A model generated the notes under the pieces. That model was not told where the DNA came from and ran no database searches. It worked only from the letters and a program-made list of their open reading frames with translations. A stretch of 64,000 bases of DNA, from NCBI GenBank assembly GCA_002269645.1, contig NIVC01001893.1:1-64000 (forward strand), read 5' to 3'. The stretch's first letter is position 1, and each line of letters starts with the position of its first letter. Source of the DNA: Macrostomum lignano (Eukaryota). The position numbers were made by a program, and so were the translations under genes. Below are positions 37,701 to 43,700 of the stretch, one piece after another.

Positions 37701-40700
37701 TTGCGTTCTAGTCCATGCAGCAGCCTCTCTCTGTGCATTAATTTCCTGGGCAACACAAACATCTTTTGCTTCTCTGCTGCTCTCGTCTCTTCTTTTTTTG
37801 TAAGCCATCCTTCCCTGGATGCCAGGCCCAGAACCCGCTTCATGCCTTGATTCCAATCGTCCCATTCGATGCCGCGAAATCCATTTTAGAGCTCTGCAGC
37901 AAAAGTACACGATAACACGATCGAAAGGACCCACTTCTCTCAAACACGCTCTCTTTTTTCGCATTTTATTCTACCGCACGAATCTAGCCTCAGAATAATT
38001 GTTTTGCTTTCAGTTTGATACAGAATTAAACGACTACCGAAAAAAGTATTTTTGAACGACTCCGCTCTACTTGTTGATTCAATGTTGAAGTAAAAATGCA
38101 CATAAATTACCAGTCTCAAAATAAATTGCAATAAACACCGAAAAAATAACCAAAGCATTCAATTATTATTATTATTATCCCGACAAAGACTAAGTGAACA
38201 ACTGCCTGTGGCATTTCACTGTAATCTATAGTTAGTTTTAATAAATAACTTCCACGGAGTTTTATATAAAGCATCAGGAGTGGAAGGCTGGCATCTAACC
38301 GAAATATTTTGACCAATCCCAAACTGTCTATGGTAAACCCTATGGTTGGGCCATAGACAGCTTTAGAATCCATGCTATCTCATCCTTGGACAAGTACAAA
38401 TTTTAAATGCATTGCACGCATACCAGGCTGAAATACTTGGACGCTTAGTTTTTGTACGAAATTTAATACAGAATAATTGTTAAGAAAATCAGTAAACAAA
38501 TTCTATTCGATAATATTTAAGGAAAACAATCGAAGCCAAATTCTAATACAAACAATCGCCGGTATATATGATAGTAAAAAAAGTAAATTAGAGGCCAGAA
38601 AACACTGGAAAACATAGCATGCACAATAACTGTGCAAAATGCAAACGGATAAATTGTTAGAGAAATATTCTAAGAAAAATGCCAATAAAATAAATTGAAT
38701 CTCTTTTTAATAAAATGTCGAATATTTTTATTATTAATCGATTAAATATGAAACGATTTACCACAATGTCCGACTTCGCTGATCTTACCAGGTGCTGACC
38801 GCAGTTAGAGGTGGGCTAGCCAAAATTTATAGTTGTAGAATTATGCAACCTGCTTATTAAAAACTATTATTGCTCAGGGCTTGCCAACTAAAAGTCTACT
38901 GATAAGGCTGAACTTGGACACTGACAGCTGTCGAAATATTGATCAGTACGATATCTATTTCCATCTCAAAGACAGGAATATCCATCTTAAACACTAAATA
39001 ATCCATCTCAAACACTAGAATATCCATCTTAAACACTAAATAATCCATCTCAAACACTAGAATATCCATCTTAAACACTAGAATATCCATCTCAAACACT
39101 AGAATATCCATCTTAAACACTAAATAATCCATCTCAAACACTAGATTATCCATCTCAAACACTAGATTATCCATCTCAAACACTAGAATATCCATCTTAA
39201 ACACTAGATTATCCATCTCAAACACTAGAATATCCATCTTAAACACTAGATTATCTATCTCGAAGACAGGAATATCCATCTTAAACACTAAATAATCCAT
39301 CTCAAACACTAGATTATCCATCTCAAACACTAGATTATCCATCTCAAACACTAGATTATCCATCTCAAACACTAGATTATCCATCTCAAACACTGAATAT
39401 CCATCTCAAACACTGAATATCCATCTCAAACACTGAATATCCATTTCAAACACTGCAATATCCATCTCAAACACTGAATATCCATTTCAAACACTGAATA
39501 TCCATCTCAAACACTGAATATCTATTTCAAACACTGAATATCCATCTCAAAAACTAGATTATCCATCTCAAACACTGAATATCCATCTCAAACACTGCAA
39601 TATCTATCTCAAACACTGAATATCCATTTCAAACACTGAATATCCATCTCAAAAACTGAATATCTATTTCAAACACTGAATATCCATTTCAAACACTAGA
39701 ATATCGACGATCTCAAACACTAGAATATCCATCTCAATTCTCAAACACTGAATATTCATCTCAAACATTGAATATCCATCTCAAACACTACAGTATCCAT
39801 CTCAAAGACAGGAATATCCATCTCTAACACTACAATATCCATCTTAAACACTGCAATATCCATCTCAAACACTGCAATATCTACCATCTACACTACCAAT
39901 ATCTACCATCTACACTACCATTATCTACCATCTACACTACCAATATCTACAATCTACACTACCAATATCTACCATCTACACTACCAATATCTACCATCTA
40001 CACTACCAATATCTACAATCTACACTACCAATATCTACCATCTACACTACCAATATCTACCATCTACACTACCAATATCTACCAGCCACCCCATGCCATG
40101 ATGCCAGACACCCCAGCGCTCACACAGACGCCAGCCGCGGCGCTAGCTTGGCCATCCCCATCTGCAGTGGTGGACATGAACTGCCGCACATTCGGCGTAC
40201 TGAAACACCGGCCCAATTCCACAATTGGCTCCTGCCTGAAGTTGCGGGTTTCGCCCCGATGACTGCAGTCGAATTTATGGTCGCCAACTGATTCTAATAG
40301 AGGCGACAATCGCGGTCGAGCTGCGAACGTCAACGTCGAAGGCGAAGGCGAAGGCGAAGGCGAAGGCAGCGATAGCAGTTGAGGACGCTGAATTGGCGGC
40401 GGCGGCGGCGGTAGCAGCAGAAACTTTCGCCGGAAACTGGCAAATCTGGTCCGATTGCTTCGAGAGTTTGTTGATGCGGCTGACGAAGTTGCAGTCCTTT
40501 GTTTATTATTATTATTATTATTATTATTATTGGTTAGTTAGTTGTTCTACTGTCTACGATTAAAAGGCGATAAAAAATTGACATCACAGGCTTGAGAAGG
40601 GTAGCGTTGTGGTAAGGACAGCAAAAAGAATCAAAAGTTTAAAAGAAACAAAACAACAAAACTGGTTGTCCGTAAAGATTAAACAACTGTGGCGGCGCTC

Positions 40701-43700
40701 ACTTGAAAGACTTTTTTTCCTAAAAAAAAAACCAAACGCGTTGCACAAACCTTTCCGCCATCCTGCCTGCTGACATTGACGCTTAAATTGGACACGTTTG
40801 GCGCAGAGCTCGATCGCTCCCGGTGCGTTTTGGCAGCCGCCGCAGCGGCGGCAGCGGCGGCGCTATGAGTGGGATAGTGAGGCTGGTGACCGCCGCCTCC
40901 CCGATGCCGGTAGGCGGCGGCACCGCCAACATTGCGATGGTGATGATGATGATTGTGCAGCAGCATCGAGGGATCGTTTTGGCCGAAGTTCTGCACGACG
41001 TTGCTATAAGATAATTCGTATTTTGTGCTCTGCGTGAACTTCACTAAAGTAAATCTGCTTGGAGAAGCGTTTTAAACAAATTGAGAACACGTGCATGATA
41101 AAGTTAAACAAATACATCAACTTGAAGATAGTATCATTCACTCAATTAATAACCATAAGATTTATTAGCAAATTATAATAACCAATTTTATATGCAATGC
41201 AATTAAACTAGATATTAACGTCTAAAAAATAACTAAAGCAGTAAGACCACCATCTATAGATATAACACCCTAATGGATAGATATAAGACCCCTATTGATG
41301 GATATAGCACCCCAATTCTTAGATATAATACCCGAATTGATAGATATAACACCCCAATTGATAGATATAACACCCCTATTGATAGATATAACACCCCAAT
41401 AGATAGATATAACACTCCTATTGATTGATATAACACCCCAATTGATAGATATAACACCCCTATTGATTGATATAACACCCCAATTGATAGATATAACACC
41501 CCAATTGATAGATATAACACCCCTATTGATTGATATAACACCCCAACTGATAAATATAACACCCTAATTGATAGATATAACACCCCAATTGATAGATATA
41601 ACACCCCAATTGATAGATATAACACCCCAATTGATAGATATAACACCCCAATTGATAGATATAACACCCCAATTGATAGATATAACACCCTAATTGATAG
41701 ATATAACACCCCAATTGATAGATATAACACCCCTATAGATAGATATAACACCCCTATTGATAGATATAACACTAACACCCCAATTGATAGATATAACACC
41801 CCAATTGATAGATATAACACCCCAATTGATAGATATAACACCCCAATTGATAGATATAACACCCTAATTGATAGATATAACACCCCAATTGATAGATATA
41901 ACACCCCTATTGATAGATATAACACCCCTATTGATAGATATAACACCCCTATTGATAGATATAACACCCCTATTGATAGATATAACACCCCTATTGATTG
42001 ATATAAAACACCCTATGCATTGATTAGCAGAACGCGAAAATCTATGCAGAAGCAGTCCAAGCGACAGGCAACAGCATAGGTAATAGGTACATGTCAAAAC
42101 ACATACATAACTAGCCAACTTACAGTCCGTCAACATCCGGGTATCGCACCGAGCCCTGCAGATGCGGCTGACCACTATTCACTGGGCAGGGCATGTAAAG
42201 CACAGAGTCGCAGCAGCGCTGATGATATCTAGCCTGACAGGTCTGGCAGCGAAAGCCGCTGAATAGGATTTTCGAACACTTGCAACAATACACAATAGTA
42301 GTGAAGAACGTCTTCCGTTGAAAGGTATGATAAGACTGCAGTTTGCGCTTAGCGAGAGAATCGATATTTTTCGATTCGACAACTAGTTCGACTATTTTCA
42401 GATGCTGCTGTTGAGCTAATTCGGTTGCATCGGCATCCCATTGTACAGGAGTTCGCGTCTCTTTGATGTACACCCGACAGTCCTCGGGTTTCAAGCTTCT
42501 AGTGGTTAGTTTCTTTTCTAATAGATCGCGAACGGTGGCCCCTGGCCTTATTGGCACTGTGGTGTGCTGATTCATTGGCAGCTGAGCTCTGAGCTGCAGT
42601 TCGGCTCCGGTGGAGGAGGAAGAATTACCCGACGATTGTTGCGCTGTCGAACTGGATATAGTGGACATTGTTGACAATAGCGTGACGTTAGAGTTGGCGA
42701 GAGTTGATGAACTGCCGTTGCTGTTATTACTATTATTATTATTTCCATTACTATTAGCGCCAGCAGACGACAAGGACGACAAAGAGTTCAAGGACGATGG
42801 ACCGTCCAAGTGTGAATTGGCGGTCAAGTTTGAGGAATAAGAATTCGATGCAGAGGCTGCTGAACCCACGGCGGCGGCGGCGGCGGCAGCTATGGACGCT
42901 GCAGTGGACGCTAACGACGAAGTTAAAGTAGCCGAAGAGGACAAAGAAGATTGCGACAAAGACGAATAAGAGGCTGCCGATGAGACCGTGGAAGCCAGCG
43001 TGGCAGTGGAAGGAGCCGAAGACATCATAGCTGATGCAGTAGACATCGCAGCTGGGCCAGACATAGAAGTGCAGCATGGCGCAGTCGAATCAACATGATG
43101 ATTGGCGCCGTTCGCAATCGACACAGAGGTAGCAGTTGAAGCGGCTAAGGAGCCCACAGCCGACATTGGCGTCAAAGTGGAAGTTGACGACATGGAATTC
43201 TGCGTCAGGGTGGGCTCCTTAGACGAATCTCTAACTGGTCGATAGTCTGAAGCCTGGTTAAACTGCATGCTCTCCTCTTGGCTGCGTTTGCGTTCCATTC
43301 GAGTTTGAAATTCGTGTATCTTGTCTGTGACATACTTGTACTCCTGCGGGTTGGACAGCGAGACTTACTCTGGCTGGAACGCATCTACTTGAGAATACTT
43401 TTCTAACACATGCCTAATCATACATGCGCAACACCCACGATCCGGCCACTGTAAATTGTGTTGGACCAAGGGGTAAGTCGCAAAATGCCCTCCTGAAGTA
43501 CTACTTAGATGACGAGGTATTTAGGCTTAATAAGACGGTCATAGTTACTCCTGTCGTTTACTCAAAATTATGCTTATTTTGCTTTAGGTTTCTTTCACAG
43601 GTAAGTCGCATTTTTGGTTAAAAATTAAGCCGCATGCCCAGTTTAAAACTAAGGGGTTGCGCATGTATGTTCCTAATGCCTCCAATACTTAATCTAAATA

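Follow-up and report, generated by a model that had tools for sequence, protein, structure and literature searches.

A candidate alternative CR2 (14-3-3 site) exon in the Raf gene of the flatworm Macrostomum lignano

Introduction

The phosphoserine of conserved region 2 (CR2), together with the 14-3-3 protein bound to it, is the main lock on Raf autoinhibition. The known alternative splicing around CR2 is limited to the vertebrate B-raf exons 8b and 9b, which act on the site only indirectly. These exons, 8b and 9b (10a), lie in the hinge that links CR2 to the kinase domain, and alter autoinhibition as well as the level of phosphorylation of the CR2 serine S365 (PMC3008692); the same paper states that they are confined to B-raf and have no conserved counterpart in the raf genes of invertebrates (PMC3008692). 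Here we describe a block of 373 nucleotides, hereafter called B, which lies just downstream of the annotated CR2 exon (exon A) of the Raf gene of Macrostomum lignano and encodes a second CR2-type 14-3-3 motif. The gene occupies the minus strand of positions 1 to 64,000 of contig NIVC01001893.1 (assembly GCA_002269645.1); this whole 64,000-nucleotide stretch is called the window.

In one class of tandem-duplicated, mutually exclusive exon pairs, exclusivity is imposed by the reading frame together with nonsense-mediated decay (NMD), and the two exons are typically near-equal in length and clearly similar. A sequence-only reading of the window had proposed two mutually exclusive CR2 exons in one Raf gene. 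Its second, frame-compatible CR2 block stands up to analysis, while the splicing of B and the exclusivity of the two exons do not find support in the deposited models, which contain A only at all three Raf loci of the species. B is a non-random, exon-like and frame-compatible block with a CR2-type 14-3-3 motif. Its features make an early tandem duplication of the CR2 exon its most likely origin, with divergence since then but with the capacity to code retained, and we tentatively propose that B serves as a minor or conditional exon in place of A.

Results

The Raf gene and its annotated CR2 exon

The minus-strand gene is the Raf orthologue of M. lignano, a regenerating flatworm. The spliced model, built with tblastn, translates exactly to PAA62866.1 (BOX15_Mlig020430g1, 925 amino acids), for which the precomputed Pfam assignments are PF02196, PF00130, PF07714 and PF00069. 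The spliced gene thereby encodes an RBD, a C1 domain and a C-terminal kinase domain in the Raf order. Both canonical Raf 14-3-3 sites are encoded as well, RSSSAPNV of CR2 in exon A and the C-terminal RSSSEP in kinase exon K5. With the RBD-C1-A-K1 segment as the query, the best matches outside Macrostomum were the Raf and B-raf proteins of many animals. M. lignano is a hidden polyploid in which extra gene copies are expected, and two more near-identical homeologous Raf copies are annotated, PAA92513.1 (locus L002) and PAA64232.1 (L003), the window copy being L001, whose contig matches the window at 100% identity in each piece compared. The coordinates of all exons are collected in Table 1; the kinase exons K2-K5 (28759..33636) are set apart by introns full of repeats.

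Around exon A, all three deposited proteins read YPDVDGL/NVVQNF...RQDGGK/AGTNIV (slashes mark the exon junctions), and a truncated older M. lignano model, which runs into the intron after A, also reads YPDVDGL/NVVQNF. The sequence-only reading had placed exon A at 41054-40751. Its phases, donor and frame agree with the RNA-based models, but its start does not, as these models begin the exon at 41003, 17 codons downstream and in the same phase. The 51 nucleotides in question (41004-41054) have a GC content of 0.31 and a negative codon score, which is intron-like, and they are probably intron; for exon A the GC content is 0.62, and the codon score in its true frame reaches 0.59 bits per codon. 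The octapeptide RSSSAPNV is found in 90 of the retrieved Raf homologues. Of 123 homologues retrieved, 107 have exactly one CR2-type motif and none has two canonical CR2 motifs; a weak second match was seen in a single isoform, from a springtail.

The 252-nucleotide intron segment abutting annotated exon A (41004-41255) is identical at all three homeologous loci, where the mean divergence of unique intron is 2.1% (P ~0.005). The identity might reflect either a role of this segment in splicing regulation or gene conversion.

The second CR2-type block

How does B fit the frame of the gene? The boundaries proposed earlier were reproduced: the RBD/C1 exon (exon 3, hereafter E1) ends at 42124 in phase 2, the first kinase exon (K1) starts at 35667 in phase 0, and B extends from 40496 to 40124, entering in phase 2 and leaving in phase 0. 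Position 40496 is indeed the first AG after ACTAACTAAC (40542-40533), which had been taken as its branch point. Translation of the splice-joins also bore out the claim that either exon alone keeps the frame and that the two together do not. The E1-A-kinase join, with A taken from 41054, is open for 883 amino acids from MERKRSQ, and the E1-B-kinase join for 906 from the same start; joining A to B through 40496 leads to a stop after ...ISWRP, and skipping both exons shifts the frame. Such an A+B transcript would not encode the kinase. Annotated A (253 nucleotides) and B (373 nucleotides) are both 1 mod 3 in length, with the same entry and exit phases. The frame of B is open from 40537 to 40082 (152 codons), and runs for 14 codons beyond the donor before it meets a TAG at 40082-40080.

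The motif of B, RCFSTPNV, agrees with the mode-1 and CR2 pattern, with R at -3, S at 0 and P at +2, followed by N-V. It differs from the usual CR2 in having Cys at -2 and Phe at -1, both in place of Ser/Thr, and Leu rather than Arg at -5, and the RCFSTPNV variant was seen in none of the retrieved Raf proteins. The distance from the motif to the donor is similar in the two exons, 14 residues in A and 21 in B. In addition, the A and B peptides give no BLASTP alignment and have only the eight-residue motif in common, and the codon of the phospho-acceptor serine is TCT in A and AGT in B, which belong to different codon families. Since nothing detectable is shared beyond the motif, and since the serine codon families differ, B would be an old duplicate if it is a duplicate of A. 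In the absence of selection, a copy of that age would be expected to have lost its open frame and its motif alike. Pfam searches with A and with B, and an Rfam search of the window, returned no matches.

The two motifs had also been described as BRAF-like (A) and CRAF-like (B). This contrast came down to a single residue, A or T at +1, and the only CR2 of Trichobilharzia Raf reads RSSSTPNV; the label therefore implies nothing about the vertebrate paralogues, and we do not retain it. In the 5′ part of B (40430-40460), an RxRxxS-type basophilic kinase consensus is followed by P6 and (PS)5 tracts, which are relevant only if translated.

Is B more than a chance open stretch? A six-frame translation of the whole window contains just two instances each of the patterns [ST].PNV and R..[ST].PNV, at 40816 (in A) and 40210 (in B), 600 nucleotides apart on the same strand, and R..[ST].PNV is present in only 0.6% of simulated introns. 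The core of B (B', 40124..40387) is open only in the frame of the motif (shuffle P 0.03-0.05). The GC content of B is 0.58, as compared to 0.28-0.42 in the adjoining unique intron, and the GC-rich block begins at 40496. We further scored codon usage, with training on the confirmed Raf exons and the neighbouring reticulon gene and with leave-one-out evaluation. All 11 confirmed coding segments scored highest in their true frame, and the scores of introns were negative in every frame. For B' it is best in the proposed frame, at 0.31 bits per codon versus 0.10 and 0.20 in the other two, and the non-repeat part of B' gives 0.37 versus 0.21 and 0.01. The frame-specific coding signal is confined to B'. 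The GC content at third codon positions (GC3) is 0.55 in B, as compared to 0.63-0.80 in A and the kinase exons. The retention of six of the eight motif residues and of an open reading frame (ORF) of 100-150 codons, amid the divergence of the rest, argues for selection at the protein level at least until recently.

Splice signals around B

The donor of B, gtgagc, is the same hexamer as the donors of K2 and K4, and gives a phase 0 exit. Upstream of 40496, CTAAC occurs twice at a distance of 38-42 nucleotides. The confirmed acceptors of the gene are YAG in eight of eight cases, with pyrimidine fractions (Y) of 0.47-0.76. Within B, the acceptor at 40387 (ccgccaattcag/CGT; in longer context, ccgccgccaattcag/CGT) has C at -3 and Y=0.65, and is in frame with the donor of A. 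The acceptor at 40423 is likewise in frame with this donor, and makes an exon of 300 nucleotides. The E1-A-B'-K1 join is open through either acceptor, with products of 971 amino acids (AB2) and 983 amino acids (AB3) from MERKRSQ. Other acceptors that permit phase 2 entry lie at 40457, 40445, 40436, 40262 and 40235. AG sites occur in every phase within the B region, and the fact that either exon alone keeps the frame is therefore a weak coincidence.

An inverted-repeat scan for docking or selector structures returned only low-complexity GCC/GGC and AT pairings. The A-B intron, at 254 nucleotides, is too long for steric exclusion; a competing RNA structure would be dispensable if the mechanism based on frame and NMD applies.

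Comparison of the homeologous copies

Between L001 and L002, mismatches amount to 2.1% (97/4551) in the unique introns, 0.55% (15/2750) in the confirmed exons and 0.8% (3/373) in B. For this count in B, P=0.044 if the rate of the introns is assumed, and 0.34 if that of the exons is. The homeologs differ by only 0.5-2%, so that the comparison is underpowered for constraint and points weakly both ways. The changes in the confirmed exons are 13 synonymous and 2 nonsynonymous. The nonsynonymous changes in B are A>V, and F>V at position -1 of the motif, which accordingly reads RCVSTPNV at L002 and L003. Every copy retains an intact ORF, motif core (R, S, T, P, N, V) and donor, as well as both candidate acceptors, and the sole indel in B is one 6-nucleotide microsatellite unit. 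The A-B intron is the most diverged local segment between the homeologs, with 8 mismatches and 3 gaps in 236 nucleotides.

The L003 copy is a mosaic. Upstream of ~37000, including A and B, it matches L002, and from K1 to the 3′ untranslated region it follows L001 with few differences or none. In the 689 nucleotides of this untranslated region, L003 has 0 mismatches to L001 and L002 has 16 (mosaic region ~36700-28070). This suggests homeolog recombination or gene conversion, or an assembly chimera.

Database and literature searches

The first search, with the whole protein, was dominated by low-complexity words and gave 2 Raf matches. A control search with the RBD-C1-A-K1 segment found a single close match, the truncated older M. 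lignano model; the full-length PAA62866.1 was not returned, and the collections lacked Raf sequences of other Macrostomum species as well as any run-assembly (Logan) transcript of the gene. A search of the B peptide against 1.84 billion representatives gave two matches, both translated tandem repeats hitting CSHRGE, which we rejected as spurious. The literature search found no paper on these locus tags, on M. lignano Raf isoforms, or on mutually exclusive CR2 exons in any Raf.

Surroundings of the gene

The Raf introns (28992-42006) consist mostly of long tandem arrays (Table 1), and contain spurious long ORFs in several frames. An 84-residue "gene" is annotated in the sense orientation of Raf at 38896-39234 (L001 17728-18066), entirely within the 21-bp minisatellite of the intron that follows B. 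The call is made at L001 only, not at L002 or L003, and is most likely a translated repeat. In Raf intron 1, a 400-residue ORF at 44218-45420 (+), antisense to Raf, contains an RNase H domain (PF00075, E=1.7e-11) and is probably a retrotransposon fragment. On the same strand as Raf, ~1.4 kb downstream of its stop codon, lies a gene with a reticulon domain (26490-27368 (-); PF02453, E=1.6e-25), a neighbour common to all three Raf loci.

Table 1. Positions of the Raf exons, block B, the 14-3-3 motifs and the tandem arrays in the window (a slash marks a splice junction; introns in lower case)
Feature	Position	Strand	Description
Raf coding exon 1	46934..46961	-	starts MEISNIIDE, ATG at 46961; tblastn, model = PAA62866.1
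Raf exon 2	43921..44024	-	tblastn with PAA62866.1 and spliced model
Raf exon 3 (E1)	42124..43343	-	low-complexity N-terminal region, RBD, C1; ends in phase 2, GGA CT/gtaagt
5′ extension of A, as proposed earlier	41004..41054	-	in frame, acceptor ccaagcag/A; not in annotated proteins
Exon A as annotated	40751..41003	-	253 nucleotides, phase 2 to 0; acceptor tcttatag/C, donor AAG/gtttgt
CR2 14-3-3 motif of A, RSSSAPNV	40793..40816	-	motif scan
A-B intron	40497..40750	-	254 nucleotides, GC 0.33; contains ACTAACTAAC at 40533-40542 and an (AAT)n tract
Candidate exon B, as proposed earlier	40124..40496	-	373 nucleotides, phase 2 to 0; acceptor aaacaaag/G, donor TGT/gtgagc
B core (B')	40124..40387	-	264 nucleotides, phase 0 to 0 if entered at ccaattcag/CGT
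Second CR2-type motif, RCFSTPNV	40187..40210	-	motif scan
Kinase exon K1	35308..35667	-	first kinase exon; phase 0 start after cctcag
Kinase exon K2	33399-33636	-	spliced model = PAA62866.1
Kinase exon K3	32731-32846	-	spliced model = PAA62866.1
Kinase exon K4	29543-29809	-	spliced model = PAA62866.1
Kinase exon K5	28759-28950	-	RSSSEP and stop codon
Tandem array, 21 bp x35	41256-42006		Raf intron
Tandem array, 22 bp x9.5	39875-40084		Raf intron, begins 40 nucleotides after the B donor
Tandem array, 21 bp x44	38960-39881		Raf intron
Tandem array, 25 bp x23	35808-36393		Raf intron
(AGAT)x403	33647-35257		Raf intron, ends 10 nucleotides before the K2 acceptor
Tandem array, 24 bp x114	29838-32578		Raf intron
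G-rich units of 33-35 bp	28992-29497		Raf intron

Discussion

The main Raf mRNA of M. lignano runs from the RBD/C1 exon through A (41003-40751, RSSSAPNV) into the kinase exons. What, then, is the role of B? Among its possible uses, we tentatively favour the substitution of B for A in a minor or conditional transcript, because the exon-like composition begins at 40496. An alternative CR2 exon at this locus is a well-founded prediction from sequence, and would operate as follows.

Splicing: The phase 2 donor of E1 would pair with the acceptor at 40496, the first AG after ACTAACTAAC, and the gtgagc donor of B would pair with K1. Transcripts containing both exons or neither would be out of frame, and hence truncated or degraded. 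This would enforce exclusivity through the reading frame, because the lengths of A and B are both 1 mod 3.

14-3-3 binding: The resulting form of Raf would have RCFSTPNV in place of RSSSAPNV as its inhibitory 14-3-3 site. Mode-1 14-3-3 ligands have R at -3 and P at +2, and an aromatic residue is tolerated at -1 or -2. RCFSTPNV is thus a plausible candidate ligand. With Leu at -5, the site would not fit an RxRxxS kinase of the AKT/SGK type. We infer from these features that B may be spliced, that it may replace A rather than follow it, and that its site may be phosphorylated and bound by 14-3-3, with a kinase specificity different from that of A. The larger proposal, that one invertebrate Raf swaps its CR2 sites by frame-enforced mutually exclusive exons, with splicing setting the upstream kinases and the 14-3-3 affinity that hold autoinhibition, is slightly more doubtful.

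Several observations weigh against the substitution of B for A. First, the GenBank models derived from RNA-seq join E1 to A and A to K1 without B at all three loci. The annotation pipeline combined StringTie, TACO and a de novo transcriptome with --isoform-frac 0.75, and removed any isoform that fell short of 0.75 of the major one (PMC5730564); a minor B isoform is compatible with the A-only models, because only near-equal isoforms were retained. Second, the B peptide with its junction flanks gave nothing at E<=10 in an indexed collection of 5.8 billion clusters, and the exact B-only, A+B' (40387), A+B' (40423) and long-A isoforms were not in the protein collection. These negatives carry little weight, since the control search missed PAA62866.1 and the collections hold no other Macrostomum Raf. 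Third, the acceptor at 40496 is weak, being an AAG after (AAT)n in a purine-rich context (Y=0.29). CTAAC is found upstream of none of the eight confirmed acceptors in the gene, and we therefore do not count ACTAACTAAC as a strong signal. Fourth, the 5′ third of B (40496-40388) is uninformative as to frame: it has no stop in any of the three, and a frame other than the proposed one scores highest. Fifth, in-frame acceptors that would join A to B (40387, 40423), which the sequence-only reading had itself named as the route that would refute it, do exist. Finally, the homeolog comparison gives little help. Intron conservation is patchy, with 0 differences in the 252 nucleotides upstream of A, and the low divergence of B is therefore weak evidence; the changes in B are 2 nonsynonymous and 1 synonymous (Fisher P=0.11 versus the confirmed exons, with only 3 substitutions).

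Some of these observations would also be accounted for if B were a non-functional relic, that is, a duplicated CR2 exon or a fragment of one, which is unspliced or spliced only as noise and has so far escaped disruption. This explanation is possible, if rather doubtful. The absence of B from the RNA-based models of three loci, the weak acceptor at 40496 and the neutral-looking ratio of 2 nonsynonymous to 1 synonymous change are in its favour, as are the (CCG)n and (GCCTTC)n microsatellites in B, one of them length-variable between homeologs, and the GC3 of B below that of A and the kinase exons. However, even though BLASTP detects no similarity between A and B any longer, six of the eight motif residues and the ORF remain, with a joint chance of ~0.006 x 0.03-0.05. 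A long-dead relic is disfavoured because the motif and ORF persist while the rest of B has diverged. Moreover, the donor, acceptors, ORF and motif are intact in every copy, and the divergence of B is closer to the exon rate than to the intron rate.

Alternatively, B' could be a cassette exon that is added after A, with entry at 40387 (264 nucleotides) or 40423 (300 nucleotides), which would place two tandem CR2-type sites ~100 residues apart. Both lengths are multiples of 3 with phase 0 at both ends, so that inclusion and skipping are equally in frame; full-length products are open from either acceptor (971 and 983 amino acids), and skipping yields exactly the annotated mRNA. The acceptor at 40387 resembles the confirmed ones (C at -3, Y=0.65), and all of the frame-specific coding signal lies in B'. 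On the other hand, the 109 nucleotides upstream of 40387 would then be intron, yet their GC content of 0.57 and positive codon scores are unlike those of the other unique introns, and no obvious branch-point-like element precedes this acceptor. No canonical double CR2 was found among the 123 Raf homologues, and the deposited models are without B at all three loci. We consider the cassette credible, though unlikely.

It is still less probable that B is used in another way: as an alternative terminal exon ending at the TAG of 40082-40080, to give an RBD-C1 protein without the kinase; as an entry point for the spliced leader, to give an N-terminally truncated kinase; or as a poison exon that would trigger decay when included after A. 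The joining of A to B through 40496 does lead to a premature stop, the frame of B does continue for 14 codons past its donor to a stop codon, and trans-splicing is very common in M. lignano (PMC5730564), which counts for spliced-leader entry at B. The preservation of a CR2-type motif, and of an ORF whose phase matches K1, is left unexplained by all of these uses. Lastly, pure chance, in which a GC-rich low-complexity intron is open and happens to contain RxxSTPNV, is very improbable. In its favour, GC-rich sequence is poor in stop codons, no frame is closed in the 5′ third of B, and AGs in every phase make frame compatibility easy. Against it, the motif (P ~0.006) shares its strand with the true CR2, 600 nucleotides away, and occupies the one frame that is open, with a consensus donor of the right phase downstream.

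If the prediction holds, an exon that replaces or duplicates the CR2 site would be a new way of tuning Ras-ERK signalling from one gene, in an animal that is a transgenesis-capable regeneration model. In vertebrates, such diversification is spread over distinct paralogues, A-, B- and C-RAF. Should B prove to be a dead duplicate, it would be only a curiosity of gene structure.

How does B compare with the systems described so far? Like exons 8b and 9b of vertebrate B-raf, it is a candidate alternative coding exon in the same region of Raf, and the cassette reading of B' resembles these hinge cassettes in particular. In contrast, 8b and 9b are independent cassettes downstream of CR2 without a 14-3-3 motif, whereas B would replace or duplicate the CR2 site itself. 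Moreover, as 8b and 9b are stated to be specific to vertebrate B-raf (PMC3008692), B would not be homologous to them. The predicted A+B transcript, which encodes RBD, C1 and CR2 without the kinase, is similar to the dominant-negative A-Raf splice forms DA-Raf and A-Raf short (PMC3964912). Unlike in these forms, the truncation would arise from a frameshift inside the candidate exon, and the transcript would probably be an NMD substrate.

With respect to tandem-duplicated mutually exclusive exons, A and B are alike in being adjacent, in having the same entry and exit phases, in being both 1 mod 3 in length and in having a common motif that suggests duplication. They are unlike such pairs in their lengths (253 versus 373 nucleotides) and in the lack of any alignment outside eight residues, and their exclusivity is predicted from the frames alone. 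At the level of the site, B is similar to the CR2 sites of BRAF (S365) and CRAF (S259): R at -3, S at 0 and P at +2 are followed by N-V, as in RSSSAPNV and RSTSTPNV.

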